64,000 bases of DNA from Gnetum montanum (Eukaryota > Plantae > Gnetophyta): positions 117,549 through 181,548 of the forward strand of contig MNCI01000307.1 of NCBI GenBank assembly GCA_015680685.1, read 5' to 3'. Under the pieces are notes generated by a model that was given only the letters and a program-made list of their open reading frames with translations, made no database searches and was not told where the DNA came from. The position numbers were made by a program, and so were the translations under genes. Positions within the stretch are counted from its first letter, which is position 1; each line of letters starts with the position of its first letter. Shown here piece by piece: positions 1-26,898 of this stretch.

Positions 1-2243
1 CAAATATGTGTCACCTATCATCATATGATAAAGAAGCAATATTCACCAAAGATATCGACAAAGATTACATAGAAATAATTAACTCAATTCAAAGACATTC
101 AAAATGTAGAGAGGATACCTTCTTATGATTAAAAAATGGTTAATTATATTGCAAGTAATGTATCAAAAAGTTATTTGCAAAAATATTGAACAAACTATTT
201 TTAAAAATTCTAATATTATGTTTACATATTCTTTGTTCAATTGCCAATTCATGAAAACTCTTCATTGTTATACAAGAATTGTGACTTAAAAGAAATTGTA
301 TATGAGCTACTAAGAAATGATAATGGATTGAATAAACATCATAGAATATTTTTTCAAACATGGAGAGCTAACATAGATTGGCAACTTATTTTGTCAAAAC
401 ATGCTATTGTGAAGTACATAACAAAATATTTTGCTAAAGAAAAAAAACTTTTGAATCCTATAATAATATGTTAGAAAAAATTATAAAATTATTGAATAAG
501 ATCACATTGGAAAAAATTAAAAAACTTTGATAACTAAAACAGTAATTGAAAGAGATATAGAAGCACAAGAAGTATCACATATGTTGTTGGAACTACCTTT
601 AGTAGAATGTAGTAGAATTTTTGTAAACTTAAATTTGTCTAATCAAGTATGTAAACAAATAGTTACAAATGAATCCAATAATGAAGAATCATATTCAAAA
701 GATGTTTTCAAAGCATACCTAAATAGACCAATAGAGATGAGTGGTTTAAACCTTTATGAGGTGACAAAAAAAATTATTTACAATCCAAAAAAAAATGTCA
801 TAAGTTATGGAAACAAAAACAAAAAGAAGCCATAGCTCAGGTTCAACTTATATTTTCAGAAAAACCAATTGAGAATATTGAAAAATGGTTAGAGTATTGT
901 CAAATTCAAATATTGCTTTATGTTCCATTTTTTTTATATGAAATAGAAATAGGAACAACAGAAGAACAAATAAGAGCTAATTGGAAAGTACATGAACAAA
1001 CAATTGAAATAATAACTAATAAAACCTAAACCAGTGGAGATAAAATTTGTGAAGATTATGAAGAAGATGTTTATATTGAAAATGTAAATCACCTTCAAAA
1101 TGAATGGGAGCTTTTATTAAGTTTACAACCAACACAAGTTTTAAATCACACAGAAGTAAATATGTTAGGATGAAGAGACATAGACATTTGATATGAATGG
1201 AATAAAATTTATCAAAATCAAATTGAAAAAGTAGTACAATTTCTAAATTCCTTGAAAAATTCTAATACTACACTCATGATGCAACCTAATATAAATTATA
1301 AACAAACATTGAATAACAAACAATAAAACGGTAATGGATTTTATTAAAAATTAGCATATTCAAAGTGAAAAAAAAGGCATTAAAACCATTAAAATTAATA
1401 ATACAAGGTAGTGCTAGCACAAGGAAATATTTTCTAACTAAAACCATTTTTTAAAAAATGACTTTGTTTGTAATGGCTCCAACAAGGGTTGCAACTTTTA
1501 ATATTCAAGAAAAAACAATTTATGCTAGTCTAAAACTATCCATAAAAGGAAAAGAAATAAATAATAATATTATTTTACATTAGTTGTAGAATGATTCTAA
1601 AGACATAAAATATATTCTCAAGAATCAAAACATTTTAAGAATAGTATACACTTATTTGCAAGAAACAATCAAGTAAATGAACACAACAAGAAAATGTATT
1701 AATATTAGTAATTAATCTAATCAATACATATATCCATGTATGATAAAGATTTAGAAGCAGAAATATTAATCACAATTGGGGCAAAAGTAATGTTGATAGT
1801 AAATATATCAACTTGTTATGGTTTGGTAAATGAAACAACTGAAACTATTATAGATATATTTTATAGTAATGAAACAAAGTAACCAACACCACCATCTTTA
1901 GTATTGATTAATTTTTCCAAACTTCTAGTCCATCATTTATGTTTTCTTCAAAGAAAATAGTTCTGATAATGCCACTACAATTTGGTTAAATAAGCAATTA
2001 CCATTAAAACTGGAATGGGCACTTACAATACATAAATCACAAGGCATGGCAATTAACAAAGCTATTGCTGATATTACACATACCTAGCAACTTGGATTAC
2101 ACTATGTAGCACTTTCTCATGTTAGATCATTATGATGCCACAAATTTACCATTAATTTTCTATGACCAATATAAATTTATAAACAAATCAAAATTAGCTC
2201 AAAGAAAAATAAATGAAGAAAATTGTCTAAAACAGTTGTTATA
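1..2243 (+). pseudogene. Helitron Rep/PIF1-like helicase (RepHel), decayed and internally deleted
   Basis: Rep motifs WRANIDWQLILSKHAIVKYITKYFAKE and ERDIEAQEVSHMLLELPL. Degenerate Walker A IIIQGSASTRKY (~1395-1430) and motif Ia VMAPTRVATFNI. GAKVMLIVN..GLVN (~1778-1830). Motifs V/VI QLPLKLEWALTIHKSQG...LHYVALSHV (~1995-2125). Walker B to motif IV is missing after ~1618. Many stops and frameshifts. Confidence 0.9.
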
Positions 2244-2409
2244 AAGAAACACTTTTAGTTCTACATATAGTGACAAGTACAATTTTGATTAATTCATATA
2301 TCATATTGTAAACTTTAGAAATAAATATTAGTTAATTTAAATTATTTTTTCCTATTTATCCCATGATAAAAACTAATATTATGTGAATAACACATTGTCC
2401 ATTAACTTC

Positions 2410-3690
2410 ATGGCTGCTCCACTTAGTTTAATGTCAATATCTGTTCTTGGTCATTATGACAAACATTGGGTTTGTGAAGTTTGTGCAATATACAAAAGTG
2501 GTATGAAGCCATTTGGAAATATCAAAGATGGTAAAAAGGTATAAACTTATCAAGTAATGGATGTTGAGGTATCAATTTCAATTATTTACAATTGTGTTCA
2601 TTGTAGTTTATTTAAATATTAATAAGACTAATTTCAATTATTTATGTTTGTGTTCATTGCAATTTATTTAAATATTAATAGCTACTAACTCATTACTTTT
2701 CATAGGAATCTATTATCAACATTTCATAAACTCAAAATTGTAAAAATGGTAAGTAATTTTATTTCAAAAATAAAATAGTTAATTATTAAAATTTACTAAA
2801 CTTATTTTCTTTGACAAGTATATAAGTATAACTAAATTTAAAAATACACTAATATCTTTATATCCATTAGCTAGAGAAAAAAAACAAGCCACACTATGCA
2901 TATTGACTTAGACTATTCATATTAGTAATGTATGTCAAGTCATAAAAAAAATAAAAACTTTCCTTTTTCAAAACTTATATGATAAATATAACCAAAATAT
3001 GTTTTTACAGGTTAATTTTATTATAGTTACCTATATAATTAACATATCAACCATAAGAGATATTTGTGGTATACAGCCTATTTGAGATGTAGATGCCATG
3101 TTAAGCCTTCCAAAGAAGGAAGCTCAAAAAAAAAAAAAAGATCAGAAAAAATATTATGTGAATGTATTACCTGTGGCATAAAACACAAAAATTATGAATT
3201 ACGATAAATTAGTGTATATTGATTTATAAATTAATAAATTAAATTTTGAATAATTATTAATATTTATAACTTATATTTCATGAAAGAGGTATCTATTCTA
3301 TGTTAAAGTGGTGGATGATAATGCACAAACTTTGATAACAATATATAATGAGGGGGGTAAAACATTATTGGAACATGAAAGCCATGAAATAAAATTAAAA
3401 TAGATACATTTGTTAATTATGTAAGATAATTTATATATTCAAGTTATGCATGTTTTATAGGAAAATGACCTTAAAAGCTTTTCAGAAATACCTAATAATG
3501 TTACTTGATGGATATTTGAGTTCAAAATTTATGTCACTATATCAAAGTTTAGAGAAGTAGAAGAATGATGATACAATGTTGATCAAATAAGAGAACTCCA
3601 ACCAACAAATGAAATAATTAAACAATTTTCCAACATTCAAAAAATAGCATCTGAATTGAAAATATATCATCTAAATAATAAAATAAGGTT
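2410..3690 (+). pseudogene. RPA70 (RPA1)-like ssDNA-binding protein gene with introns, Helitron-associated
   Basis: Exon 2410-2568 (MAAPLSLMSISVLGHYDKHWVCEVCAIYKSGMKPFGNIKDGKKV*TYQVMDVE|gt) resembles RPA70 OB-fold DBD-A. LWYTAYLRCRC...CITCGIKHKNYELR|YLFYVKVVDDNAQTLITIYNEGGKTLL (3061-3400, phase-2 intron) resembles the Zn-finger DBD-C. The last exon from 3461 contains IFEFKIYV. Confidence 0.8.
2575..2686. repeat. ~56-bp tandem duplication in first RPA intron
   Basis: atttcaattattta..tgtgttcattg..tttatttaaatattaata occurs twice in tandem. Confidence 0.8.
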
Positions 3691-3990
3691 TTTATTTTTT
3701 TATTTGCAAACCTTTTGTACATTTTCCTATATATTTTTTCAACTAGTGTACTACCAACACATATTTTTTATTTACAAATAAATTCTTCTACTTGCTACAA
3801 GATCTTTTGAAAGGTACATAATATTACATTGTATTAATAGAGATTTTGTTAAGGCAAACACTCCATAATTATATTCTATGACATTCACAACTATGATTAA
3901 AATGTTTTATTATCAAACTTTAAATTTGGAAAAAACACAATTATGAAAATTATTGCTATCTCATTGAATAAATAAAATTTTCAATAACAT

Positions 3991-4011
3991 TTATTATTAT
4001 TATTATTATTA
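3991..4011. repeat. (TTA)7 microsatellite
   Basis: Direct reading of ttattattattattattatta. Confidence 0.9.
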
Positions 4012-4187
4012 TCAATGAAATGTTATCTTTAATAGCCTATGCATATTTACAATCAAAGTTACTACATAAGATTATAGTTTTAAGAAACAAAAATCAAATT
4101 GCTACTTCTTGCTTTCAAATATTGATATGTAGAGTCAATAAATAGTTAACAAAAGAAAACATACAATAAGAAAACAACAATCCTTAG

Positions 4188-5090
4188 TAATGAAATGTTT
4201 GATGGTCACTGCATCTACTAGGCCACCTATACAAGACCTCATATACGCGGCCGCATCGATGCAGGCCTATCTACGCATCCTTCCATGTGTCGACATGGCC
4301 CCGTTTACATGATGCCTTTTTCAACCTATAAATAAGTGGGCTTATGCCACACTTATTTACCTTTTTTGTCAGTTGTAGTGAAGCTTTTGCAGTTTGTTCT
4401 CACGAGAGTTAGAATATTTTCCAAGTGCCCGCAGTAGGTGTAATGAAGGTTTCTGGCTCTTTATTCAAGTGTTGATGTATCTAAGCCATTAGCATGAACG
4501 GAAATAAAGACGAGCTTTCAAGCATTCCTTGCAGCATTTGGACTTAGTCATTTAATGCATTTAGTAGCTTGATGCTTCTATGCTTTGATAATTACTTAGG
4601 TTTCTCTTATTATTATTTTAATCACTATCGCTCATTCATAGTTCATAGAAACCATATGTACGACCATCTCGAACGTAAATCCAACACTTGGTAACCTAGT
4701 GATGCTTAACATTTGGTAACCCAGTAGTGGTTAGGGGATGATCAGAACCTGCCTAGAAGATGGAATCAGATACTTATGCTAGGAATAGTTAGGATATAGA
4801 TAAGGATAATTATAGATTATATGATATTTCATTCCTTACTTTCCATACCTTAATTAGACGGTAAAAGATAAAGTAAAAATCCATAAAAATCAGTTGCCTC
4901 AATCTCACTTAACCATAGTCACTAGAACATCACAAGTAAGATTGGGAAGACAAAGACCATTCTAAACCAAAGTTTTTATGGTTAGGGTCTGGTGTATGCA
5001 AAGTGCTTACAGTCTACAGAATTCGACCGAGTCACGTCTGAATGTCCGTGATTCATATGGTTGGGCATAGGGGTACCTAGCCGCTCATCA
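4188..5090 (+). repeat. 5' LTR of element A
   Basis: Colinear with 16507-17449. TATA box cctataaata at ~4325. Ends ...gccgctcatca. Confidence 0.95.
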
Positions 5091-5091
5091 T

Positions 5092-5109
5092 TGGCACCAT
5101 TATCAAGGA
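5092..5109 (+). promoter_or_regulatory. Primer binding site, tRNA-Asp type (decayed)
   Basis: TGGCACCATTATCAAGGA versus the Athila-type TGGCGCCGTTGCCGGGGA: all six differences are G>A or C>T transitions. Confidence 0.75.
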
Positions 5110-5236
5110 TTGTTAGTCTTATATGCATCATCTAACCTTAGCAAAATTAAAATTCACACCGTTGGAACAAACCTAGGATAGTAAAAATTTATGCATGCTA
5201 GGTGGATTAAAGTAAAAAGTAAGGTACACTGATTAA

Positions 5237-8200
5237 ATGGATCATCTAATATCCAACATGTCTTCTTCTCATTGGCGAGATGTATCTAACCCATCAGTGC
5301 CACAAGAATGTCGGGTGGTATACAAGCATCCTGATGAATATGTCCCTAACTTCACATTCATCCTCCATCAGGATGAGCATCTGCGATGGTAGGACATGGA
5401 AGGCAACATCATACTACCACTCGACCGATCAGCTCCTCGAATGTTGTTTCACAATCTTGCCAAACTAGGCATCTAGGACCATGGAGTGGAGTATATCATG
5501 GAGGACCATGACTATCGGGACTATCATCCCACTGAGGCCCAACAAGCACGAGACTAGCAACAGGTAGAATGTTATGAACACCTGAAGGGGAAACAATTCA
5601 GTAATCCCTTATTCTTGCAAGGGATGCAGGATGATGTGGAACCTATCTTTCATGATTCCCATTCATCCAAAATTCCTTTAGTCCATCATCCAGAACAAGC
5701 CTCAAAGTGACCAAGATCCTCAAGGGGATGGAGGATCATGTAGTAAGGATGGGCAAGATGATCAAGGTCATCATCAGGGTAGAGGAGGAGATTGACACCA
5801 GAGCGGTGGCAACTCCTCTCCCTCTTCTCCATCCTCTCGCTCTCCTATACCTTCATCTAGTTCATGCTCTGATCATAACCATCATAGAAAAGAGTGAAAG
5901 GATGGTGGTTGTAAGGACCGAATGGAACAACGTGACGGAGTGCGCAACCAATCGTGTAAGGCTCACCATCATGAAAGGAGGGGTAGCTGAAATCATCATA
6001 GACATCATGGTCCTAAGTAGGACTATGACTTGGATGAGCCATTGTTGGCTACTCAAAGCATGCTCCATATAGTCGAGGTAGTTCAGATCCCTAGTAGGCA
6101 CGTAAAGGACAGCTATATCAAACACATTGGCATGAACAACATCTCCAAATTTGAAGGGGGATAAAATTATGATCCGCAAACTCACCTATAGGCGTTCCAT
6201 GATGCTTGCACCCTGTAGAATATTGATAAGGATTGGTAGAAGCTTGAGCTCTTCCCTCATACATTCATCAAGGAAGCAAAAAGTTGGTACCAGTCCTTGG
6301 AACCAAAATCAATCAAAAGATGGAGTACGATGCTTGAGATTTTCAATAAAAAGTATCAAACATACTCCAGAGTGGTGAATCTGAGACATCAAATCCAAGG
6401 ATGAAAGCAAGGAAATCATGAACCCTTGGATGCAGCCATGAGAAGGTACTATTCATTGTTACATCAGTGCCCTGGTCATGGCTACTCTCAATGGGAACAA
6501 CTTTGCCATATCATTGATGGGTTCCGCTTTGAAACAAGGAAAATCATTGGCATGTACACCTAGGGACGATTATTAGAACTAAGGGCCAATTAAGTACAAC
6601 GCCTCATTGAGCAAGTGACCAAAGAAGAGGGGGAACTCAAAAAGAAGGAGAGTGCAGAGGAGTTTAATTGGGATCCTTCCATCAGAAAGAGGAAAATCCG
6701 ATTTTGTGAAGATTAGGAGGAATCACCACTAGAAGCAATAGTAAACCTAAAGACCTTACCTTTAAAAAAATTTTCACCTAAAATATTGGCAAAGGTTGAT
6801 AAGATGTGTGACTCTTTGGACAAAAAATTTGAAAGTATGCTGAAAATTGTAGAAGAGTCCAGAGAACAAGGTAATGATCCTGATCGGTGTAGGAAGAAGG
6901 AAGCTGAATGTGCCCAACATAAGGGTAAGGGAAAAGTTACTGTAGTAAAATAGGTTGTAGACTCTAACACAGAGGAGGATGATGAATGTGGCATATGCCA
7001 ATATGAACATCCTAAGAGGTGTTGTCTTGTGGTGTCAAATCTCCAAGAGTCTAGGGTGTATGCGTTGAATCCTTGCTTGGTGAAGCGGAAAACACCACAA
7101 AGGTTGCCTTACCCTCAAGGAAATCCTAGGTAGTTCCACCAACAACAGCAAGGATATTATCCAGGTGAAGTGCCATTGCAACCTTATGAGCACTTCTAGT
7201 AGTGGAGGCATCCACAAGCCTGGGGAATGCCACCTCCAAGGCAACAGTACCCTTACCAATAGTTAGATCCCTATGGGTACTACGTTCAGCAACCAGTATC
7301 TCCATAGGACTCTTCTAGTCATGTCACATTTTAGAATTATTACCACCCCCAAAAATATTTTTGACCACAATCTCCATCACCCAAGGGAGAAAGCCCACAT
7401 CTCTACTATCCTACATCACCTTCACCTTCCACTCCTTCTCCACAATATCCCACTCAGCTACCACCTACTCCACCTATGCAGGGGGAGATACTGCCACATC
7501 CACAGCAACAAAACACTACGAGGGTAGTCAACCTACAACTGACACCTCAGTCAAGTGGATCAGAATCCAAACAATAAAAATGTCCTTTTTTCTTGTCCAA
7601 TAATCTGAACACACCCTCACATACACTTGTGGCCAGTTCCTTTGAACCTCAAAGCACCTCCACCATTCCACCACTCGAGCAACCTTGAAACCAACCATCC
7701 TCCAATGTCCAAACGGTCATGCTCACACATGTCGTGACCAACTAGATAAAGGCAGGGTATCTTCCCTAAAAATAGACTAATCCAAGAAGCCCCCTCATCT
7801 ATCTTCAAGTGGCAGGGAATTAGCCATAGAAAGCTCTTCTGGACTTAGGTTCAGGAGTCAATTTGATCTCACATGACATGTACAAGAATTGAAACCTGCC
7901 CCCATTAAGGAAGAGCAACATTCGACTCAAGCTAGCAGACCAATCCATCACTATCCCCTTGGGATTAGTGGAGGACATTGTGACCACTGTTTGTGGGTGG
8001 TCTTTTCCTACTGATTTCCTTATCATCCGTGTGGAGAATTACAAAGGGAACTTTCCAATCATAATGGGAAGAGCTTAGTTGAGCATGGTGGATGCAAGAC
8101 GAGAACTCCAAAATCTTTCCCTTGAAATTTTAAAGAAAAATCCATTTGGAAAGATTGAGAAGAAGCATGTTCCATGCATCATGTACAGTGACACAGGGTG

Positions 8201-11200
8201 CAAATGTGTGCAATAGTTATGGTCTGCTAAGCAGAAATCCATTCAAGCATGTAGTCGATGTACCGAGGAATCACCAGTTCAATAGTGCCTATACATAGCA
8301 GCCACCAACCAAGAGGGCACCTAGTGGCTAACAGCTAATCCTACTAGTAGCACATTGTGCATGGAACCGTCTGAGGGGCTTGTATGAGGCTACATAGAAA
8401 GCATGGATGAAATGGAAGAGGTTCATCAACAAGTCTCCACTGTTGATGATCATGATGATTGGGGAAAGTTACAAATCCCTAAAAGCTTCAAAAAAGAGCC
8501 CCTAGATCTCAAGTCTATATCGGCCCACTTAGGATATGCAGTTTTGCAAAATGGGAAGCTAGTAATTATCAATGCCATCCTTGCTCCTCAACAAAAGAAA
8601 AAGTTGCTAAAGGTGGTGAACAAATGGGATGCCACGTTTGCATGGTCATATCCTAAGTTAACCAAAGTTGATCCCAGGGTTTGCCAGCATTGGATTTATA
8701 TTGACTCCTCCATGAAGCCACGACGCCAACCACAAAGGTAGTTGAACCCCAAATTGAAGCAAGTAGTCAAAGATGAAATTGAGTAGTTGCTAAAGGCAGG
8801 GTTCATCTATTCTATTGCCAATAGCAAATGGGTCAGTCCACTCATTATTGTCCTGAAGAAAGGTGGAAAATGAAGGATCTATATAGATTTTCGATTGCTC
8901 AAAATGGCTACCTTCAAGATCACTTCCCACTCCCATTTGTGGACCAGGTGTTGGACACCAATGCAGGGCACCGTTCTTATAGCTTTGTGGATGGTTATAG
9001 TGGCTATAACCAAATCCAAATTTCACTAGAGGACCAAACCAAAAAAACTTTCACATGTCCATGGGGGACTTTTGCATATAAGAAGATGCCTTTTGGCCTG
9101 TGTAATGCACCTACCACTTTCCAACAGCTTGTCCTCAACATTTTCCAATAGCAAATTGGCAATGGGGTAGAAGTCTTCATTGATGACTTCTCTACCTATG
9201 GGACCACATTCGATCAAGCCATGGACCACCTTGAGTAAGTTCTAAAAAGGTGTGTAGACACTAATCTATAATGCAATTGGCAGAAAGGCCACCTTATGGT
9301 CCAAGAAGGCATTGTGTTGGGTCATCGTATCTCATACACAAGGATTAGCGTGGATCTTGAAAAGATTAGGATCATCCAAGGAATCACCCAACAACCAAGC
9401 ACTATAAAAGATGTTTGGTCATTCCTTGGCCACACTAGTTACTACCGGCGCTTCATTGAAAATTTCTTGAAGACTGCCAAGCCATTGATAGAACTCACAA
9501 AGAAAGATGCTATGTTCATCTGGACCAAGGAATGTGAATCTACATTCCAATTTCTTAAACAAAAACTCGTAGAGACTCTAGTTCTATGGGCACTTGATTG
9601 GTCCAAGCCCTTCCACATTATGATGGATGCATCCAATTATGCCTTGAGATTTGTGCTTACACAATGTGATGATCAAAAACATCCATACTATATCCACTAT
9701 GCAAGGCATATCATTGTGGATGCTCAGCTTAACTACAGCACCACTAAAAAGGAGTTGTTGGCGGTGGTGTTCTCCTTGGAAAAATTTCAACACTATGTGC
9801 TCGGATACAAGGTGTTTGTGCATACTAACCATAGTGCTATTTGGTTCCTAATGAACAAACCAACGGTGAGCCCCCACATCATCTGATGGCTGGTGATTCT
9901 TCAGAAGTTTAACCTTACCATGGTAGACTGGAAGGGGACCGAGAATGTGGCTGCTGACCACTTTTCTTGGTTGTGATGGGATGATGCACAAGAGGAGGAG
10001 CCCCTCTTTGACCAATTTCCACATAAACTCCTCTTTGTGGGTGCAGTTGATTCGCAGGTGCCCAAGGCATCACCTTGGTTTTGCCACATCCTCACCTACC
10101 TCACAACTCAAGAGTTGCCAAAGGAGTGGAACCACTAGCAGAAACAATAGTTTCTCCATAAGGCCAAGCATTTCATGGAAATCAACGGCCACCTTTATAA
10201 GGTGTGCACAGATGGCTTGGTTCGATGGTGTGTCCCTGATGATAATACACTGCATGTCCTCCAAGATGCTCATGAGGGCCCTTGTGGGGGCCACTATGCT
10301 GGATGCTTCATAGCCATTAAGATCTTGCTTGCAAGGTATTACTAGCCCATAATTTTTAGGGATGCACAATGGATTGTTCGCTCCTACAAATGATGCCAGA
10401 GAGACAGTGGGATGATGGCATAGATGGAGGGACCTCAACAGTGGATCTAACCACTAGAGCCCTTTGACATCTAGGGCATCAACTTCATGGGGCCCATCAC
10501 ACCCCTATCCAATGGAAAGGCGTAAATCATTGTAGCCATGGACTACTACACAAAGTGGCCAGAGACGACATCCATCATTGCTTGTTCTTCAAACACCTCC
10601 GCACGATTTGTTCAACAACAAATCATCAATAGGTTTGGAGTGTCACGTGCACTCATCTCAGATAATGGCACTCATTTCATGAGTGTCGCTTTTCAAAAAC
10701 TCATGCAACACATGGGGGTTACCCATAAATTTACCACACCTTACCACCCCCAAGCCAATGGGTAGGCCAAAGTTACCAATAGGGAGATCACCAGGATCCT
10801 TACTAGAACCATCAGCAAATATAGGAGGGATTGGAGCATCAAACTTAACAATTCCCTCTAGGCCTATCGCTCCACTTGGAAGCTTCCTATAGGTTATTCT
10901 CCCTATGAGTTAGTGTATGGTAAGTTACCAAAATTCCCAATCCAAGTAGAACTCTAGACACTATCCACAGCTAGCGACTTAGTCCTTGACCTCCCACTAA
11001 CACAATGTGAACGACTTATTAATTTAAGTGTGCTAGATGAGAATCAATCAGTGGCCTTGTCTTCAAATGAGATCCATAAGGCCTACAACAAAAAATGACA
11101 TGATCTTAGGATTCAAAAGGTCACATTCAGACGTGGGGACAAGGTATTGTATTGGAACCCCACACATATATCACAACTGACCAAGTCTCAAACACTGTGG

Positions 11201-11425
11201 GAGGGATCTTACATTGTCTTCGAAACCTTCCCATTCAAGGCCTTGCTTATCCACAAACCTAAGGACCCCACAAGAACACAGTTGGTCAACTGGCAACAAC
11301 TGAAACCTTTCTGTGAACTCTACCTAACCAGTGCTACCACCTCATCATCACTCGGACAACCTTGCTCCATTTTTTGCATCTCCTCCTTTCCACCCAGTCG
11401 TGGGGGAGACCATCCTCCATGCTAA
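5237..11425 (+). pseudogene. gag-pol of element A (gag, aspartic protease, RT, RNase H, integrase), many stops/frameshifts
   Basis: Protease KALLDLGSGVNLIS (~7829). RT DHFPLPFVDQVL..SFVDGYSGYNQI..MPFGLCNAPTTFQ..VFIDDFS. RNase H DASNYA..NYSTTKKELLAVVF. Integrase HEGPCGGH, ISDNGTHF, TPYHPQANG. Confidence 0.95.
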
Positions 11426-13473
11426 CCCATTCTCCTTTACACCCCTCACTATTTTTAAAATTTTTGTTTTACACTTTTTTGTTTTTCAACATCATTCATA
11501 TATTTTCCAATTCTTACTAATTTTTCCTTTCTTAAAATTATTTTTCCATTTCCTTGTTATTTATTTATTTATGAGTATGTGTGTGTTTTATTTTCTGTTG
11601 ATTGCTAATATGTCATCTAATTGTCATCAGGTTTGGTGTGGATGGTCTTCGTTGCGATGGGTCACCAGAAATAGCCACTTATTTTACCTTTCTCCTACCC
11701 TTGCATAGTTGTTCTTGGTTTTTTTGTGTCTACTTTCACCTCATAATATCAACAGTGAGTCCACTTCATCCACCCATTCACCCACTCCATGGTTTTCCTA
11801 CTCTTGGAAACATGCAACCACTTTTCACTTAAAGACATTGTAATTAATGTGTGACTTGTGTAGTTCTTAGACTTAGGGATGAACTAATGGTTTGAATTTG
11901 GTGTGACTTCAAGGGGAATGTAACATTTGTTATCCTTTTCTACCCCATGGGTGGTGGGAGTGCCCTTATGGATTTCCTCCCACTCCAAGTTCTTCTCTAC
12001 ATGGAAGCTCCGTGGCAATTTGACCTTGCATGGTGTGGTTCTCATCAAAAATAGAAAATAAAAAAAATGAGGATTCAAAGCACACCCCTTGGTTGAATGC
12101 ATGCACACAAGCATGGGTCTTTGCATGGTGTGGTTCCCACAAATCAAAGAAAACACAAGAATAAAATCTTAACCATGTGGGAATTCAAAGCACACCCCTT
12201 AGACCACCTTTCACGGGCCACAAGCACTACTTATGGGACTTCCTTTATCCTCTCTAACTTGGTCCCATTTCACTTCCATCCTCTCATGTTTGTTGGAGCT
12301 ATGGTTCTCTATGGGTGCATTCCTATCCACTTGGGGGTGGATGGGTCTTCGTATGTTGCTACGATGTCACTAGATGTGGATGGTTTTGGGTCTGAACTTG
12401 GGATAGGTCCTATCAGGTCACTTAACCACAACTACACACAGGGTTTCATGTGACCAAAATTTGGAATTCCACACCTCACTCCTCTCTCTTCACCCACTTC
12501 TCTCCATAACTCACCTCACTGCTGGTCTTATGTTTTGATCATGTGTCGTCATTCCTTTGAACTTCTCATGCCACAACAGGTTCTCATGGATGGGTGTATT
12601 AACTTGCGATCACTATTCCTTAACCCTAGGGCCCACGGATCCTGGTGTTGGGGATATGCAAGGGCTACAAAGGCTACCACCTACTATGGGGAGGACCTAC
12701 TTGCATATTCTTGGTGCCGTTTGTTAGTCTCCCATCCTGTTGGTTTGTTGTTGGCTGGTTTCCATGTTATCCTTTGCTTGATTTCTTTCCCGTGGAGTCC
12801 ATTCTCATCACGTTCTCCTCCTTTGACTCCTTTTCTAGCTCAGCTTCCCTTCCTCTTGTCCTCAGCCATGTTCCAAGCCTCTCATGCTCTTCAATCATCC
12901 CAATTTGGTGTTTTAAATTTATCTTTTCGAGCTTTTTCTGGGCTAGTCAACATTGGTCAATTGGTGTAACCTCCTACATATACAAGGCCCCATATACGCA
13001 ACCCCCTGTGTATACATGGCCGTGTATATGTGGCCCCATCGATGTAGTGCCCAACCCCTATATATATTCCTGCTGCGCTTTAGATTTTCATCATTTTGCA
13101 AACAAATTGAGGGGATATTTTGTCATTTTTTCTATTTGATTTCTTCTCGAGCACCTACATTCCATCGCATGTCCGTATCAACTGATCCTTGCCCTCTTGA
13201 TCACCTAGAGGTATGCTCTAAACCGTGGGAGGGTGAAGCCTATGTAATTAATTAATTAATTAGGACTTTGCACCTCTAAGGGAAGAATGGAAACAACAAT
13301 TTAAACTCCAACTCATCCTTTGTTGGTTTTGGCTCTAACCCATGAATTAACACTTAGGGGGACTTAATGGGATGCCGATGCAAACAATATAACTTAGTTG
13401 AACTGAGAAGGTGTATAAGGACCATCTTGAGCTACTTATGCATAGTCTAATGGGTGGTTATGTTTGATTGTAA

Positions 13474-16250
13474 ATGGCACCCAAACCAAGGCATCCAAGG
13501 GGTGAAGGACCATCACAACCGAGGGATAAGCATCCACGAACGGGAAGGGCACGAGGCATGCAGCAACCAAAGCATGCGGAGGGCTCTCATGCAACTGGCC
13601 CCCTCCATGAAGGACCTGATGTGGAATATTTCCATCAGATTCCCGAAGAGGAGATGCTAAGCAAGCAATCGCAAGGAGATGAAACTTCAGGGATAGCACA
13701 ACGACTTGAGGTCACCCTGACCCAAGCCTGTTTTGATGCTATCAAGCTACGAGACGTGCAACAGATGATCCTACAAGAGCTAAAATTTGGACCATTTCTC
13801 AAAAATGCACCAGAAGATGTGAGACTTCAGTTGCAAAGTTCTCCTATGTGGTCAATCATCACAACTAGTGGTGAATAGTACCTAGGAGAAACCTACCTCT
13901 TCTGGAAAAATCGACAACTAGGGTCTAGTGTAAGAATCAAAGACATATATGTTTCTTACTCTATAGAGGTAATAGTGCAAGCTCTGGGGTTACCAAAGAT
14001 TGGAGCAGATGTGGCAAAGATCCCAAAACAAGTAGATCCTAAGTTAAAAGGGGAGTAGATCAGGCGATGCTATGGGGTTGACTACAAGGAGTTTGGCTCT
14101 CTAACCACCACAGAGAGGGTGTATTCAAAGATCGCGTCTTATCACCTAAATCTAATGGTAAGACCCAATAAAATCAAGGCCTTCTCTACTCGTGCATGTG
14201 TTGCTCTAAGTGGAAGACCAGCTCTCCCCTTCCCCAGCCTGATCAGAAAATTGTGCAAATGGGCAGGGATAGCACGTTACGCCAATGATACACTCGAACA
14301 CACCCCAATTACCTCATGGCATGAAATGATGAAGGATAGAACTCCTAACACTACACAGAAGGAGGAAGAGAAGTAAGCACCTGCACAAATGCCAAGGTCG
14401 GGTTCGCAGACTACTATAGAACACATTCACGAAATCTAAAAATTGCTCTTGAGCGAGCAAGAGTAACTTGGCAGGACTGGTGAAGGGGAAGACCCTTCAG
14501 TTTATCGCCCTGCAATGTGCCACCTAGAGCAAGTGGCTTGATCAGTCATTTTGTTAGAAAGAGCAGAGCTGATGTTCTTCGTCGCCCAAACACAAGTGCT
14601 AGCAAGAATGAATCCTAGGATCTGAGAGGTAACAGTATCAACCCAATAGCTATTTCTTGAAATTTCAGGGAATGTTGCTACCTTCTCAATACACTTAGAA
14701 GATGGTGAAGAGGTGACAGTACTGGTGATGTAGCACCCAGGATAGGAGATTGTGGCCAAAGTGATTGCTGATACAATTGCTATGGTTCTCAATGCATTAG
14801 TAGTGCCTATACTAGATGTACTTGGGCTTCAATATATACAGGCATCCACCAGAACTTCACGTAGCAGGATTGATGCAGCACAACATGAAGAACTATTGGA
14901 CTAATTGGTGGGAACTAGGCAACCACTTTCGAATGTCTTTGACCTTCCAAATAACATCACTGCAACCCAGTCAGAGCTGCTTTCGACAAGGAGTAAGAGC
15001 CTCATTTTGGAAAGGCAACGTAAAGCTGCTCAAGCCACTTGTCAATGCTTTGCAATAGAAGTTACCCAATTAAGAATCCAACTTGTCAATCCAGCTCTCC
15101 TCAACCATGAGATCACCAGAGATGAAGCTTTTCAACAACTTTAGGTTAAACTTCAGATAGCTGAAGATGAGTGAGAGTCGACGATCTTTGATAAGGCCTT
15201 CGCAGACACTTAGACATATCATTTAGACAAGGACTTGATAGAGGTTTGCTAGGAGAACGTCAGGTTGACCGAGGAGGTCCATTGCCTACATAATATTGGT
15301 GTTGAAAATAAGCACATGAAAACTTTTATTCGCCAATAGCATGAAGAGCAAGCTAGGGTGAGTGCTAATGTAAGAAGGTTGGCCACTAAGAACCAAAATC
15401 TATCCATGGAGGAGGTTCGAACTCTCTGACAGAAATCTACAATTGAAATTTCCACTTAGAATAACGAGGCCTTGAAATATGAAAAATTCAAAAATCATTA
15501 CAGGGACCAAGTGGGATTGCAAAAAGAGGTAAACGAAAAACAGATTCAAGTCGCAAAGGCTAAAATGAACCAAGCACTCCAGCAGCTCCAAGGAGGAGGC
15601 AAGGTATGACAACCTATCTTGAATGGGTTGAATGCCTACAATCAAGCTAAAATCTACCTCAAAGAGTTGTAGATTGAGGAAATGATAGAATATATGGAGC
15701 TTGCCAACCTTCGCTATGAAAACCTGGCCATGCTCATAGCTGAGAGACCGCGGTCTGAATTGGAGAAACAAGTGGCCACCTCGTATTCTCTATATGAGGG
15801 CGAGTTCCAAGTGCACAAAGCAACAAAGAAAAAATTGGAAGCAGCAAATGTGGAACTCAAGGTTCTCCACACAGGATTTGAAGGACAACGTATGGTCACA
15901 GAGTACTTGTCTCATTGAATGACTGACTACTAGTAGCTGCAAACATCAATTCAAGCATTGAACATCGAATGGAAACAATTCGCAGCCTGGTTTGTCAACT
16001 TGAAAGAACTCTTCCCCACGCTGTCGTGCCCTTGGTAGGTTTCAATCCCAGTGCATATTTGTGAAGCTTCCTGGATGGTGAATGATCCTTGAAGCAAGGA
16101 GGAGAAAATGAGGGCCCTTATGGAGGCTTTCCGGTTGCCTCCAAAAGTTGTAGCTACTACGGGAAAGCCATCATTTATGCCACCACCATCGCATGGGCCA
16201 AAGGCTGGAGAAGGTCTATCAGAACTACTGCCACTAGGATGGTGTGATCT
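13474..16250 (+). pseudogene. Extra ORF (ORF3, env-position) of element A: plant-transposon-protein-like domain plus long predicted coiled coil
   Basis: Starts MAPKPRHPRGEGPSQP. Contains GETYLFWKN..VSYSIEVIVQALGLP and LPFPSLIRKLCKWAGI. E/K/Q/L-rich heptad-like region at ~14900-16000. Colinear homolog in element B at 53304-56170. Confidence 0.8.
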
Positions 16251-16496
16251 TCTCCAAAAATGTTTGCATTCTTCTACACGATAGAGACTCTAGGACCAGC
16301 AAGGTGTTCAATTTTATCTCTGAACACCATCATTTTTGTAATTTATCCTTCTATGTACACTCGGGCACTTGGTAAAATTGATGTTGTGTCATGTGTGTGT
16401 GTCAGGTCATGTGTTTTTGTCAAGTCATGTGTGTTGTAAATAAAAGTCCCTACCTTCCAAATTATAGAGGAACTCAAGGACGAGTTTTTACTCAAT

Positions 16497-16506
16497 CGTG
16501 GAGGTA
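16497..16506 (+). promoter_or_regulatory. Polypurine tract region of element A
   Basis: ...tcgtggaggta lies immediately before the 3' LTR. The preceding gaactcaaggacgag..tcaat is conserved in element B (reverse complement of 53074-53110). Confidence 0.65.
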
Positions 16507-17449
16507 TGATGAAGTGTTTGATGGTCACTGCGTCTATTAGGCCACATATACGGGACCCCATATATGCAGCCACATCGATGTGGCCCCATATACGTGGTCC
16601 CATCGATGCATCCTTCCATGCATTGACATGGCCCCATTTACACAATGCCTTTTTCAGCCTATAAATAAGTGGGCTCCCGCCACACTTATTTACCTTTCTT
16701 GTCAATTATAGCAAAGCTCTTGTGGTTTGTTCCCACGAGAGTTAGAATATTTTCTAAGTGCCCGCAGTAGGTGTAAGGAAGGTTTCGGGCTCTTTATTCG
16801 AGCGCTAAAGTATCTAAGCCCATTAGCATGAATGGCAATAAAGACGAGCTTTCAAGCATTCATTGCAGCATATGGACTTAGTCATTTAATGCATTTATTA
16901 GCTTGATATTTCTATGTTTTGATAATTACTTAAGTTTCTCTTATTATTAGTTTAATTTCTATTGCTCATTCATAGTTCATAGAAACCATAAGTACGACCA
17001 TCTCGAACGTAAACCCAACACTTGATAACCTAGTGACATTTAATGTTTGGTAACCTAATAGTGGTCAGGGGATGCTCAGAACGTGCCCAGAATATGGGAT
17101 CAGATACTTATGCTAGGAATAGTTAGGATATAGATTAGGATAAATATAGATTAGATGATATTTCATTCCTTACGTTCCATACCTTAATTAGATGTCAAAA
17201 GATAAAGTAAAAAGCCATAAAAATTAATTGCCTCAATATCACTTAACCATAGCCACTAGAACATCACAAGTGAGATTGGGAAGACAACAACTATTCTAAC
17301 CCAAGGTTTTGCTAGTCAGGGTCTAATGTATGCAAAGTGCTTACAATCTACGGAATTCGACCGAGTTCCGTGTGAATGCCCGTGATTCGTATGGTTGGGT
17401 GTAGGGGTGATTCGTATGGTTGGGTGTAGGGGTACCTAGCCGCTCATTA
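16507..17449 (+). repeat. 3' LTR of element A
   Basis: Begins tgatgaagtgtttgatgg. Carries an extra tandem copy of gtgattcgtatggttgggtgtaggg near its end and an extra U3 motif copy relative to the 5' LTR. Confidence 0.95.
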
Positions 17450-18049
17450 CTTAGTATTTAGACTAATGTTATGGCCTATACTTGCAAAAAAATTTAGTGA
17501 GTTTTTTATGCTAAAGTATAAGTGATGTTTAAAACTTAAAATAAATTTATGTTCTTAAAAGTAATTAAATCTTTGAAAACACTTCTCAATGAAGCATATA
17601 ATTCTTTAACTACTCTAATATGAAAAGCAAGGATTGTGATATAAAATTCATGAGTAATAAGCTTATACATAAGCATGATATCAATAAATGAATTTCTTTT
17701 TTGTAGGGTGGAAAAGAGAGAAAGGATTGGACAAAGAGAATTGATAAAATACCATTGAATATTAAATTTTGAGACTTGCAAAACATTGTAAATAAAACTG
17801 ATAGACCATGATTCTTGCAAACCAACCAAAATATCATTGCTAAAGATATTTATATGATATAATAATCATTATTCAAAATAATGTAATTTATCAAAACATT
17901 CAACTCCTAACAATACAAGTATATATTTCAACATAAATTAAATAACAAAATACATCAAAATCATCTAGGTACTCAATAAAAAAAATTTATTAATAGCATT
18001 ATCAAAATTTAAAAAATTAATCTATGTTTACATAATCCAAATCACTAAT

Positions 18050-19240
18050 TCTAAATGTAAACTTCTACCCCTCATCCTTCCATAACTTACTATAATCTTG
18101 AAATCTAAATTTTTCATTTCCATCAAAAAGTTTCAAAAGTTTTTGATAATATCTTCATCATTGCCATCATTAAGCATGGTAACCTTAGCATCATACAAAG
18201 ATTCTCTTTTGCTTTTGTATCCATTTGACAAATGTTGAATTCCATCATGGCTATAAATATAATATCTTTGATTAAAATTTTTATTTGACAAGTCATGTCC
18301 TATAAATTTGTTTAATATACCAGCTGCAACAATATTGTCATGATGTTTGAAACATAATTTTAAAAAAGAGCTATCATTTTATAATTTTAATTGTTGAGGG
18401 GAAACATTGTATCTTTCAGCATCTCTACAATCTAAATTGAAACTTTTTTTTTCCTTTCAACGGTAAGTAATATTCCTGCAGAATTTAAAGACATTATGTT
18501 TGTTAAAACTACAAAACTAATATACAAACACATACTTTTTATAACACTTCATTTCATATTTTTTTACATAAAGAATACAATGTGCATCTACACAAGTAGG
18601 ATGATTAGTGTTACTTCCATGTATTATTTTTTTTAGAGTCTCATATGACAATTGTCCTAAATAAAGATAACATATTATTGTTTTTTAGAAAACACCTATA
18701 CATATAAAATAATCATAACATACATCTAGTATAGCATACTCACCATCATACAATGATTCTTTATTGTTTTTATATGCATTTGCTAAATGTTGATTTTCAT
18801 CACGATTATAAAAATGATAACTTTGATCAACATTTCTATTTTATAAGTCATATGCTATATAACTATTTTGTGTAGCACCAACAACAAATTTTCTATGATA
18901 TCTTATACATGATTTCTTCAAATACTCGTCATTTCCTACTATTACTTGTTCACAATAAATACTAGTTCTATAAACATTTGTGGAATCAGAATGCAAATTC
19001 TTTTTTGCCTTTAATAGTAAGTGACATTTCTACACAATTTTAAGTGATTATATTAATTCAAACTATATAAGTTACATACAAATATGTACTATTCATAACA
19101 CTTTGTTTTTTATAGTATTTTTACCTAAACATTATGTTGTGCATCTACATAAGTAGGTTGAGTACTATCACATTCATGTATTATCTTTTTTGAACTCTCA
19201 CTTAATAATAATCCAAAATAAAGAAAACATATTACTTAAT
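18050..19240 (-). pseudogene. Unknown protein with two tandem homologous domains, each split by an intron at the same position
   Basis: Copy 1: ICFLYFG..ESSKKIIHE..PTYVDAQ|..NRNVDQSYHFYNRDENQHLANAYKNNKESLYDG. Copy 2: ICYLYLG..ETLKKIIHG..PTCVDAH|..NKNFNQRYYIYSHDGIQHLSNGYKSKRESLYDA. The copies are ~550 bp apart. Confidence 0.65.
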
Positions 19241-19249
19241 TATATGTAT

Positions 19250-20405
19250 AAAATAAACAAAACATATACCATTTATTTGAAGTATTTTCCCACTTGTCAT
19301 AAACCTCTGTTCAATCTCACTACATAAAATTCTTTTTGAATATTTGCTCTTATCTTCCTATTACTTTTTCTATAGCATTTTTTCCTTGTTTTTGGTCACT
19401 TTATTTCCACCACATAAAAAAATATTTTGAATAATTTCTTGCCTAATTATATTTTGTCACATAGTTTTCACATTTTTTAGAAGTGTGGGCTTTAAAAGAT
19501 AATGACATGCTCCAAGCATAATTTCTTTGTTGATAATGTCTTTATTTTCAACAATAGACATTACTAAGCAACAAAAAGAATATTAAAATATATACATATA
19601 TCTACATCAAATTACTTCACCTGCAATATATCAAGAAAATTACCTATTAAAAGTATTCTTATTTTTTTAGGTATTTTTATTTTTTTTATAACATACTTTG
19701 CTATGTTGAATCTATGTTTAAAAAAACTATGTGCTCATCAATAACAATGAAATTAAACATATTTACTTCTTTCTTCAATACATCCAAGCATTCATCTCCT
19801 TAGCACAACTTGTAACTGAAAAATAAATAAAAATTTATTTCTAAAAATTTTAAGAAAAAATTCATACTATTAGCTTTAACAAAACAACACATAACCATAC
19901 CTTTATAATTACAAGATTTGAACCTTTTTTTTTTTTACACCAATAAACAGAAAACATGATGATCGACAATAAGAACATGAACTCCATGTAAACCATCATT
20001 ATATTTTGTGCTAATTCCATGACATTATGATATTTACTATGTCTACAATCATGTGCAACTCTTTTATATAGATAATCCTGGCAACAACTTCGAAAAACAC
20101 ATAACAAGAAATAGCTTTAAATCATAAATGTCTACTACAATTTACAAAGTGCATAGTATGTGTCCCACTTATCCATTATTTCATGTTAGTATAATTGAAT
20201 TTTTACTTTTCAATTAATACATCCAAATCTACCACTATCAACATTATTATTATAACAATATATTCACATCTTTTGTGCAACCTAGCATGCTCAAAATTCT
20301 CAAATCACATCTTCCATTGACGATTCTAAAACCACCTTTTTATACACTCATTATATTGGGAATATAATGGTTATAACACTAAACTCAACGAGAAGATAAA
20401 ATCTG
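19250..20405 (-). pseudogene. Further decayed minus-strand exons of unknown function (possibly the 5' part of the tandem-domain gene)
   Basis: GT/AG-bounded segments. Frames such as ECIKRWF*NRQWKM*FENFEHARLHKRC and HEIMDKWDTYYALCKL..LCVFRSCCQDYLYKRVAHDCRHSKYHNVMELAQ. Confidence 0.4.
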
Positions 20406-20893
20406 CTAGTTATATGTCACAATTGCTTTGTCATGTTACATCATTGTTCTATAACATTATCATAATGCAAACCTAACATATACTTAATAAGTTATAACTG
20501 ACACTGAATAACAACAAACATGTCAAACATCAACTATAAGATCTTGTTCTTTTTTCATTGAATGACATAACCATACTCTACATACTAATTGCACACACTA
20601 TACAAATAAAAAACATAGTTTAAGTAGTGTAGATTTAGAAGGCTCCCACAACGAAGAACTCAACATAAGAGTACACTAACTTCTAAATTCATATTTTACT
20701 ACATAAACACTCACAAAATCTATCTTATGCTTGTTTTGATTTTTTAGTTTTATAGTTATTATTTAAAAACATCATCAAAATTTAGCATCCTATTAAGTTC
20801 TATATCAATAAATTTTCTTTGTCCTAACTTGTATTTTCTTCTTTATTTCGATAGATTTAAAAAAAAGAATATAAATAGATCATATTTTATTAG

Positions 20894-21670
20894 GGAAGCT
20901 TGGCAAGAGGAATCTTCCCATCTACTAAGGAATTGTGATAGTGGAGATCTAGATGAATGCATGTCACCCATTGTAATGAAAGCTCATTTTCAATGATATG
21001 AAGCTACTTTGAGAAACTTTGTCTATGAATCCAGGTTGCATTAGCAAAATGAAATATCTAAGTATGAGCAAATTAATTCATTGATAAATTATTGCCACAA
21101 AGTATATGTTTGAATTCAAAACATGAGAAACATGACAAATAATTAGTGGTTGTGGCCATTTTATAAATTTTGAAATTTATGTTTGTATTATGAAATTGAG
21201 GTTACTTCATTTAATATACCTAACAATGCATGGTTTGAATGGTTGAAAGATTTTGGTCATAATCCATATTTGATGATAGAAAATTCTTCCTCTTTTGTTC
21301 AAGGTGCAAATCATAGTGATTATTTTTTGTATATGGATCCCAAAGTTAAAAATATATACACAAACAAGTTTGGTTAGCCAACCATGAGTTATTACTTATT
21401 TTCCACTATAGAAAGAAGATATGTCACTTGTAGTCTATCAAGATTTGCTTTTTATCAAGTAGTGTATACAACAAAAAAGTGGGATATAAGTTACTTTTGG
21501 AAAACAATGTGTAGGCTAATAATACAACTTCATCTTTCACATATAATTTATGCATATTGAATATTCAATTTAATGGTGGACTAACATTGGAAGACCTGTA
21601 ACATGCACTCCATCAAGTGTTGTTGGAAAGTCCTTATGGTGGAGATTCTGATTATGATGAAGATCCATAA
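20894..21670 (+). pseudogene. Decayed ~260-codon terminal exon of an unknown gene
   Basis: Acceptor ttattag at 20887-20893. One frame runs from 20895 for ~225 codons in very AT-rich DNA with only TGA/TAG stops, which CGA/CAG/TGG transitions would explain: EAWQEESSHLLRNCDSGDLDEC...IPNNAWFEWLKDFGHNPY...KKWDISYFWK. After a frameshift it ends ESPYGGDSDYDEDP*. Confidence 0.65.
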
Positions 21671-22089
21671 ACTTTAGCATATATTTTGTCTTGTAATGTT
21701 AATAAAATGAGTATCCCTTTCTCTTTATGATTATGTTCTATTTCCAATAATTACACTTGTTTCATGTGATACTACATATGCTTAATAAATAAGGACAACA
21801 TATTATCTTTTTTGTGAGGATTACTAATAAATATACATAGGTCTTTACATTAGCAATAATATAATACCACCAACTACTAAGAAAATAGACACTTTGTCAT
21901 ATGACTAATTATTCCCTTTTGCTAATATCTTTAAGGTAAATTCATAGCTACTTATAGTCATTAAGTACAACCAATGCAAGAGCCTAGCTTGTGCTTTGTT
22001 TAGATGGTTCTAATCTAGTTTCGAGTGAAGATGGTGGATGTTTTGATTGACATAGGAGCTAGCCAAAATTTTCTTCAACCAAAATATTT

Positions 22090-23185
22090 TTTTAAAATCC
22101 AAGCTATTGTCTCTTCATTCTTGGAAAAATTTATTAGATGCATAATTTATAAGATTGAGAAAAATAGAGAAAAAATAAATAAAAATATATGCAATTTGTC
22201 AGTACTATTTCCATACCAAAAGCTTACTTATTAACTTTCTTGAACAAGTCTTTGTAAAAAAGATATTATGATCTTAACTACTAATAAAACCATCATTCAT
22301 TGCATGATCTAAAAACGTCAATAGAAAGTCATAATAGCCCTCAACATTTAACAACCCAACCTGAAAATAAATAAGAAAAATTATTAGCTAATTTTTAACA
22401 TTAATGATGATAAATTATGCCTAATGTTATAACATCATAAAACATACTAACTTGTTATGAATTCCAAGTTGTCTCCAACTAATAACCTCCATAACCTCTT
22501 CCATGGTTCTAAAACCACCTCGTAATAAGAAAATAAAATTATGTTAACTACAATGGAATACATTAAATATTACAAAATGAAAAAAAAAATATAACAACTA
22601 CCTGGTAAAGTAATAAAGGCATTTGAGTACTTTATCATCATTTCTTTCCTCTTGTGAATAGTATTAACAATATGAACATTGCTAATTATTTTACCAATGA
22701 TCTGTGTAGTAAAAATCACAAAAAAAAAAGACTTAAACTATTAGTATGATAGGCACAAGTACACTACACTAACAAAAGATGACTATTAATGGAATAGTAC
22801 CTACTTCAATGCAAGAAATTTTGGTACCACTTCGTTATTCAAGATACAAATAATAATCAAATAATAGGTTCATGAGGAAAATACCTTAATAAGAATCCAA
22901 AGTCATAATCTTATCCAATAACATTTCCTCCTTTGCTAAAAATAGTGTCAACTACTACAACCATTATCTCAATGCTTCCTCATCCATATATTAATTTTAT
23001 CTTTCTTCCAACCTTCATACCAAAACTACTAAGTTAAATAAACAAAAACATATAAATTTATTATACATACCTTGAAAATTAAAAACAACTAACATTACCA
23101 TTTCTAATCCAACTTTTTTAATAGCATTTTCAAATCTATTATGCTTACATAACTTACTTCCACAGAAAACACAAATTCTTGTCAT
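22090..23185 (-). pseudogene. LOG: LONELY GUY-family cytokinin riboside 5'-monophosphate phosphoribohydrolase, spliced, pseudogenised
   Basis: Exons: 23185-23099 (MTRICVFCGS..VGLEM); 23012-22915 (VGRKIKLIYG*GSIEIM..GGNVIG); 22831-22801 (VVPKFLALK*); 22701-22602 (..IHKRKEMMIKYSNAFITLPG); 22518-22448 (GFRTMEEVMEVISWRQLGIHNKL); 22360-22217 (VGLLNVEGYYDFLLTFLDHAMNDGFI..); probable last exon from ~22147. Internal exon lengths 98/31/100/71/144 nt have consistent phases. Three in-frame stops in exons 2-6 and some mutated splice sites. Confidence 0.92.
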
Positions 23186-23860
23186 GTCACTATCCTCATA
23201 ATGATTTCTCCTTGTTTGCAACCATTACTATATTTTCTAACAAAATATTTGATCTACTTCTCAAGCACAACAATAACATTGTATCGATACATTCCAAACT
23301 TCAATAATGTAACCACTTATTAGTTATGATAGCATGACTACATCAATGACACCAAGGACATTGTATCTATGCATGCCACAAAGAAAGCCCTCTAATAATG
23401 TTACCAATTATCAAACATATCATCAATTGCAATTAAAGCATTATTTCACTAAACATGTTTGTCTATCTTTTTCGTACTTTCCATGCTACCTTTCTTCTCC
23501 AATATGCCATGTCTCCATTATGTAGGCCTTTATGTAACAATCTTTGTGTAAACATTTCTCTCTCTTCTATCTTTTGAATAGAAACCAAGCTATAAATTTA
23601 CTGAGGTGACTTTTAATGCAATCCTTTACTACAGCAATGTTAGTATATGCATCACTCATAGATTTTAGTCCCTCTCATGTTAGCTACCATGCAAATCTAT
23701 CACAAATTTTCATAACAGTGCTTTCATAATCATTTTAAGTATTAACTACTTGATGAATATTTTAGATACTTTTCTAAAAACTCAAATTCCAACCTCATTT
23801 TAGTTGATGCCCCAGATAAAGGTAGAAATAAACACCAACGATAGTTGCTATGACAAAGAA
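23186..23860 (-). pseudogene. Decayed coding segment in frame with and upstream of LOG (possible fused N-terminal domain)
   Basis: The frame continues from LOG exon 1 without a splice site: ..NALIAIDDMFDNW*HY*RAFFVACIDTMSLVSLM*SCYHN**VVTLLKFGMYRYNVIVVLEK*IKYFVRKYSNGLQTRRNHYEDSD-MTRICVFCG. Confidence 0.45.
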
Positions 23861-26705: not shown

Positions 26706-26744
26706 AAAAAATATATTAAGCCTTTATATGGGTCCAACAAATAT

Positions 26745-26898
26745 TTTGTGATTGCCTAGACAGAATAAAAATTTCTAGTTTTCAGTATTTTTAAGTGACT
26801 AGTATACACCAATTACAACAAATCCTTTGTGTTTGCCTGGGTGTAATAAAAATTTTTAATTTTCAGTATTTGTATGTAGGTAATATGCACCAAATACA
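26745..26898. repeat. ~81-bp degenerate tandem duplication
   Basis: tttgtg.ttgcct....aataaaaattt..ttttcagtatt...caccaa.taca occurs twice. Confidence 0.75.

Follow-up and report, generated by a model that had tools for sequence, protein, structure and literature searches.

Pack-MULEs and other gene-packing DNA transposons amplify pieces of host genes, usually in non-coding form. Gene capture is also described for Helitrons of maize and other plants (Morgante et al. 2005; Kapitonov & Jurka 2007, as cited in PMC7947767). Here we analyze a candidate case in a 64,000-nucleotide stretch of Gnetum montanum DNA (contig MNCI01000307.1, positions 117,549 to 181,548), referred to below as the window, in which a decayed LONELY GUY (LOG) family gene lies in a highly repeated block of 6 kb near the remnants of a Helitron. 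A preliminary description of the same DNA had proposed that a Helitron lineage may have maintained a whole LOG gene as cargo.

The locus can be compared with four described systems. Plant Helitron capture has the same combination of a Rep-Pif1 helicase with an RPA-like gene and the same arrangement of intron-bearing host DNA 3' of the transposase genes, co-amplified and reduced to pseudogenes. The differences are that the LOG gene is near-whole rather than a short fragment, that the cargo may comprise two cytokinin-pathway genes, and that the family is very AT-rich and old; its linkage to the Helitron is seen as adjacency at a single locus, with no termini found. Unlike in Pack-MULEs, neither terminal inverted repeats nor 9-base target duplications were seen around the LOG block. 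The reference for the gene itself is the plant LOG At2g37210 of Arabidopsis (PDB 2a33, Pfam PF03641), a cytokinin riboside 5'-monophosphate phosphoribohydrolase. The exons are collinear with it and the HKRK-type and PGGxGTxxE-type motifs are recognizable, whereas the identity is about 41-64% per exon, two stops are present, an Arg replaces a Gly, and the GGG motif is interrupted.

The fourth system is provided by the sex-determining regions of Salicaceae, where a Helitron-like element appears to have captured partial or intact copies of a type-A response regulator, and by Populus euphratica, which has nine Y-specific LOG-family genes described as translocated (PMC7947767). There, as at the present locus, copies of cytokinin-pathway genes, namely LOG and a response regulator (here a likely fragment), have accumulated in DNA rich in transposons, in association with a Helitron-like element (PMC7947767). 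However, the poplar regulator is of type A, its duplicates are few, recent, and functional via small RNAs, and the poplar LOG copies are not presented as cargo of a Helitron (PMC7947767), whereas the receiver motif found here is more type-B-like and the family consists of many old copies. The poplar case may be regarded as a parallel, not as an identification. A full-text literature search for Helitron with LONELY GUY, phosphoribohydrolase, or cytokinin capture returned no description of LOG as Helitron cargo. Helitron gene capture is a known kind of event; its LOG cargo is probably new.

High-copy block carrying the LOG gene

The block includes, from left to right, a regulator-like gene with an internal tandem duplication, a middle segment, and the LOG gene (Table 1). 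Contigs of three DNA runs (labelled as species A, B, and D) and a single poly-A RNA run from species A were aligned to positions 17441-23440 at a likeness of at least 80%. Each DNA run placed 5400-6200 contig pieces on this interval and covered all 30 of its 200-base bins, with similar results for the three species labels. Per run, about 400 pieces were at least 99% alike, about 900 were 95-99% alike, about 2200 were 90-95% alike, and about 2400 were below 90%. Among 1556 variable sites, 40 are listed at which the window differs from nearly all other copies. At most of these, 20-76 distinct contigs per run were counted, the number falling to 1-16 at a few listed sites near the left edge and at 19820. 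Within the LOG exons and introns, each listed site has 26-76 distinct diverged contigs in each of the three DNA runs. Transitions are about twice as frequent as transversions among the family differences.

The longest contig pieces reach about 300 bases, share about 85% identity with the window, and have a depth of about 5 apiece; they therefore represent separate paralogous copies and not low-complexity noise. In species A, summed depth ranges from 300 to 950 across the regulator-like gene and from 740 to 2800 across the middle segment and LOG. The highest summed depth falls at 21241-21840, and the depth at 23241-23440 is 1200-1500. Summed depth is not a copy number, and the estimate is limited to dozens to hundreds of copies. 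The 6-kb LOG block is part of an old, diverged, high-copy mobile unit common to the three related species labels. Because the block is high-copy in all three, the LOG gene is mobile-element cargo and not a host gene. The repetition expected of a captured segment was found for 17441-23440 alone, an interval that does not cover the RepHel (Rep-helicase) and RPA remnants. A single-copy LOG, named beforehand as an outcome that would speak against cargo, is incompatible with these data, every bin being covered by many diverged contigs. The same counts contradict the idea of an ordinary host LOG paralogue decaying immobile in heterochromatin; the plant-type exon-intron structure would fit such a paralogue, and a low-complexity artefact that might rescue it is unlikely at the observed length and identity of the contig pieces. 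We give it almost no credence.

The copies differ in structure. The number of the approximately 555-base units of the regulator-like gene varies, some contigs skipping one unit (from 18265 to 18826) and others going back one (from 19004 to 18492). Many family contigs leave the window at 20834 and rejoin it at 21208 with consistent loose ends in all three DNA runs, the segment 20835-21207 of this copy being either a small insertion or a replaced segment. Some family copies skip approximately 21745-22169. A set of 14 contigs of species B departs from the window sequence precisely at the LOG start codon (23185) while being mutually consistent, which marks a sub-family with other sequence upstream of LOG rather than an element end. 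This sub-family also bears on the extended LOG N-terminus of the preliminary description.

Searches by other routes returned no relatives. Within the window, blastn and tblastx found no second copy of either this block or the RepHel/RPA block. Protein-word searches with pieces of LOG exons 4 and 1 and with 104 residues of RepHel gave none, and neither did metagenome and viral-contig scans. A full-library HMMER search with the LOG exon 4 piece produced a single chance match, to a TLPGSCY-repeat protein.

The LOG gene and its decay

The gene was searched exon by exon and not as a joined protein. Three exon pieces match PF03641 (E 5e-8, 2e-6, and 1.5e-4) at consecutive profile positions 25-61, 58-87, and 85-111, and four pieces are collinear with At2g37210 at residues 7-43, 82-119, 114-143, and 141-168. 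The identity to At2g37210 is about 41% for exon 1, about 45% for exon 4, and about 64% for exon 6. Exons 1, 2, 4, 5, and 6 are bounded by AG/GT splice sites, except that the donor of exon 2 is AT, and the introns are 83-87 bases long. Their positions presumably resemble those of plant LOG genes. The mini-exon 3 (about 22800-22770) and exon 7 are doubtful and not cleanly recoverable; hence, of the six clear exons and probable seventh described earlier, five are retained with splice sites, one of them with a lost donor. By its sequence matches and predicted exon structure, the gene is a plant-type LOG. Since the introns are kept, it was copied as DNA and not via spliced RNA.

Two other readings of the gene were rejected. 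A bacterial or fungal origin disagrees with the plant-style introns and with the sequence matches: Arabidopsis LOG is the best match of the start-codon piece and of two core exon pieces out of three; for the third core piece, a fungal LOG scores 35.7 bits vs. 31.3 bits for Arabidopsis, a difference that is not meaningful over about 30 residues. Deamination as the sole cause was also rejected: counted by hand against At2g37210, G-to-A and C-to-T changes can account for about two-thirds of the amino-acid differences in exon 4 and about 40% overall. Deamination thus contributes to the divergence but is not its whole cause.

The motifs PGGFRTMEE and HKRK are present as the preliminary description reported. 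The first is the phosphate-binding motif, with Arg for Gly in PGGxGT. The second nucleotide-binding motif reads G-stop-GSIEIM vs. GGGxxGxM, the stop being a TGA at 22982-22980, and a TAA at 22276-22274 interrupts exon 6. The gene lacks intact PGGxGTxxE and GGGxxGxM motifs and an open frame, and this copy, as it stands, cannot give rise to an active enzyme. Together with the lost donor and the broken RepHel, these stops make the tightly packed gene cluster proposed earlier a row of decayed pseudogenes.

The poly-A RNA of species A yielded 14 reads out of 12.6 million sampled, all less than 90% alike and most only partly on the interval. There is no credible expression in this one sample. This LOG copy is dead and silent.

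Whether the lineage as a whole keeps a working gene can be judged from the other copies and from the mode of decay. Under such a scenario, a Helitron lineage would retain a whole functional LOG, perhaps with a response regulator, and some copies would be intact, expressed, and able to alter cytokinin where the element is active. The near-whole capture with introns and splice sites is in agreement with this, and the family is large, so that intact copies are possible. However, the copy at hand has two stops, a lost donor, the Gly-to-Arg change in PGGxGT, and a stop in GGG, and two stops in 166 codons are, by our estimate, close to what neutral C-to-T and G-to-A decay would give at the seen divergence. 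Neither stop falls on one of the 40 sites (of 1556) listed as setting this copy alone, a weak hint that other copies share them. The two listed sites within LOG exons, 22316 and 22340, where this copy departs from nearly all others, are synonymous, as a maintained gene would have them, but too few to weigh. Two cytokinin-pathway genes in one block would be an unlikely coincidence, if the response-regulator reading discussed below holds; on the other side, the RNA reads are few, poor, and partial, and protein searches gave no LOG relative of the family, a weak argument with such short exon queries. A maintained whole LOG acting on cytokinin, as initially proposed, is not upheld by this copy, and we regard a working gene elsewhere in the lineage as very unlikely.

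This particular copy is ordinary dead transposon DNA. With a near-whole LOG in many copies, perhaps along with a response regulator, the family would store a great deal of cytokinin-gene sequence in silent chromatin. Stores of this kind swell the apparent size of the LOG gene family and may lead annotation astray. In plants, sex-determining regions repeatedly contain cytokinin regulators and LOG copies, and a Helitron-like element has been implicated there (PMC7947767); a mobile unit carrying such genes is of interest for this reason.

Helitron remnants and the carrier of the block

The Helitron remnants and the LOG block are separated by an LTR (long terminal repeat) retrotransposon, element A, at 4188-17449 on the + strand, delineated by self-comparison of the window and by reading of the junctions. 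Its LTRs are about 890-940 bases long and 88% identical, with a Kimura two-parameter distance (K2P) of 0.135. The LTR pair and the sequence CTTAG at both junctions bear out the element and its target-site duplication as proposed in the preliminary description. The insertion would be roughly 5-27 million years old, depending on the rate, and because element A landed in it, the DNA it split must be older. After excision in silico, only about 1 kb remains between the RPA remnant and the cargo block. The two blocks also stand out in composition. The GC content is 24-29% at 1-4000 and 18000-26000 and 39-44% over 4000-16000, reaching 36% by 18000; element A has 42.5% vs. 24-27% in the surrounding blocks. 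The CpG observed/expected ratios of these two blocks are 0.05 and 0.15, compared with 0.32 for the flank and 0.33 for element A.

Two pieces of the Rep-helicase remnant are similar to Pif1. The piece at 1929-2084 matches 18 PDB Pif1 chains (E 1.5e-5 to 4e-4), and the piece at 1721-1879 matches the Pfam domain Pif1_2B_dom (E 7e-5) and aligns to PIF1 residues 272-299. The pieces are collinear on Pif1, lie on the + strand, and are interrupted by stops, so the Pif1-family helicase domain of an autonomous Helitron is represented at 1721-2084, by its 2B and C-terminal motifs. The gene is broken, with many stops and frame changes and stop-free pieces of at most 104 residues. The window begins inside it; a Y..KY..K-type Rep motif was read by eye at about 400-450, and a Pfam search of the Rep region gave no match to Helitron_like_N. 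An RPA70-like gene is usual in plant Helitrons, and here a Cys-x2-Cys ... Cys-x2-Cys zinc-ribbon pattern was read by eye within 3043-3204. Of the RepHel and RPA70-like genes initially assigned to the + strand, the former persists as Pif1 helicase remnants and the latter has a weak match (Table 1), and both are broken pseudogenes.

In our view, the locus is, on balance, probably a single old copy, silenced and heavily decayed, from a large family of transposons that are most likely autonomous Helitrons, with the LOG block as cargo. We infer that RepHel/RPA and the cargo block form one rolling-circle element and that the cargo is without present function. The founder would have been an autonomous Helitron, equipped with genes for a Rep-Pif1 helicase and an RPA-like protein, that captured host DNA in its 3' part, at the DNA level. 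The captured cargo would have included a near-whole plant LOG that kept its introns, a response-regulator-like gene containing a tandem duplication, and the middle segment. The element with its cargo may then have spread, reaching dozens or hundreds of copies during the shared ancestry of three or more related species, and element A would have split this copy later. The Helitron as the vehicle is supported by the adjacency of the two blocks once element A is removed and by the very unusual composition common to both. Read-through of a Helitron past its end is expected to place cargo 3' of RepHel, and the LOG block sits there.

Helitrons begin with 5'-TC and end with CTRR-3' preceded by a subterminal hairpin, and they insert between A and T without target duplication. 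The preliminary description had pointed to a 3' terminus between RPA and LOG as an observation that would separate the two. When the first 30 kb were scanned for such 3' ends, no GC-containing hairpin with CTRR turned up on the + strand in 1-4187 or 17455-27000, so none lies between them; decay could have erased the 3' end. Several observations weigh against the Helitron as the carrier: (i) the linkage of RepHel/RPA to the LOG block is seen at this locus only; (ii) neither terminus was found, the 5' end falling outside the window and the 3' hairpin with CTRR being absent from the scanned Helitron and cargo blocks and from the flank up to about 27800; (iii) the Rep domain and RPA are weakly supported; (iv) RepHel looks somewhat more decayed than LOG; (v) LOG and the response-regulator-like gene are antisense to the + frames, which would also fit the cargo of other element types; and (vi) in a transposon island such as the window, elements often become neighbors by nesting. 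Thus, from the initial proposal of a Helitron carrying LOG, LOG as transposon cargo stands, while this Helitron as the vehicle is plausible and not demonstrated.

Another scenario is that the LOG block is part of some other mobile element, which only happens to adjoin a dead RepHel/RPA remnant in the transposon island. Candidate carriers are a non-autonomous Helitron, a gene-packing DNA transposon, or a retroelement or pararetrovirus-like unit with intron-keeping antisense genes. The high copy number is silent on the vehicle, and the lack of termini and the many nested elements in the window agree with this scenario. Both LOG and the response-regulator-like gene are on the - strand, and a protease-like motif was read by eye on the + strand near 22040-22075; however, the middle segment has no retroelement domain match. 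Similarly, the GC content and CpG depletion differ slightly between the RepHel/RPA block and the LOG block, but the very unusual composition is common to both, and they directly adjoin once element A is removed. We consider a different carrier possible but less likely, and retain the autonomous Helitron as the preferred vehicle.

Neighboring genes and layout of the window

The coordinates of the features are collected in Table 1.

Table 1. Features of the Helitron remnants, the LOG block, and element A in the window
Feature	Position	Strand	Basis or remark
Helitron Rep-helicase remnant	1-2250	+	Rep tail cut by window start; Pif1-type pieces 1455-1580, 1721-1879, 1929-2084
RPA70-like gene, probable remnant	2377-3560	+	Weak: Rep_fac-A_C, E 0.2 at 3308-3403; zinc ribbon by eye
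Target-site duplication CTTAG	left 4183-4187, right 17450-17454		Flanks element A
Element A LTRs	left ~4188-5074, right ~16509-17449		Direct repeats; self-comparison
Decayed tandem-domain gene	17455-20320	-	Receiver fragment 19460-19582; ~555-base tandem duplication
Middle segment (described earlier as an unknown + strand gene)	20321-22216		No family match; most highly repeated part
LOG pseudogene	22217-23185	-	PF03641, collinear At2g37210 matches, splice sites
LOG exon 1	23185-23099	-	
LOG exon 2	23012-22915	-	
LOG exon 4	22701-22602	-	
LOG exon 5	22518-22448	-	
LOG exon 6	22360-22217	-	
Sequence upstream of LOG start codon	23186-23860		Repeated unit at least to 23440

The tandem-domain gene was described earlier as a gene of unknown function. 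Its duplication is real: self-comparison aligns 18189-18677 with 18744-19234 at 72% identity. All six PDB matches of the 41-residue piece at 19460-19582 fall in the corresponding part of receiver domains, ARR1 of Arabidopsis accounting for two (E 0.4-1.5 for the six), and 27 of its 30 nearest named Atlas clusters are PF00072 (Response_reg; score 0.92). A Pfam search of the piece gave no match, and upstream receiver exons were unsupported when searched. By eye, the piece reads GAC-H-YLLKP followed by a NIWQHV-like type-B receiver end, with a stop at the place of Trp. The support from two tools is weak but consistent, and the gene likely holds a fragment of a response-regulator receiver, recognizable in its C-terminal part. 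By eye, the receiver motif looks more like type B, a status that is unproven. The tandem units resemble decayed GARP motifs by eye only (HRKFV ... HL..Y[KR]); a GARP (B-motif) DNA-binding domain in the two units has no Pfam, NCBIfam, PDB, or Atlas support.

If the receiver reading is combined with LOG, a further possibility is that a Helitron lineage spread a two-gene cytokinin module, consisting of a near-whole LOG and a response regulator, through related species, with some copies intact or transcribed. We consider this improbable. If it were true, such copies might be a source of LOG activity, or of small RNAs directed at the cytokinin genes of the host, and might seed events like the sex-setting regulator duplications of poplar.

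The middle segment, claimed earlier as a + strand gene, gave no match to Pfam or any other family and no retroelement domain. On the + strand at 22031-22100, a reading ..LIDIGAS.NF.. (motif at about 22040-22075) resembles a retroelement aspartic protease by eye, and Pfam gave no match. It sits just past LOG exon 6, opposite the doubtful exon 7. Upstream of the LOG start codon, the GC skew shifts near 23800.

The window as a whole is plant DNA, a transposon island crowded with nested elements; an Rfam search of it gave no match. An old Ty1/copia-type LTR retrotransposon occupies 28830-38324, with direct repeats at 28830-30401 and 36857-38324 that are 76-79% identical and with - strand reverse-transcriptase and integrase frames between them (about 31557-36025). 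A second relative of element A, inverted, lies at 52325-63589 and is 66-68% identical across more than 5 kb; therefore, the element A family landed twice in the island. Satellite-like tandem arrays are found at 39815-40796 and 44241-46214, with periods of about 346 and 359 bases.

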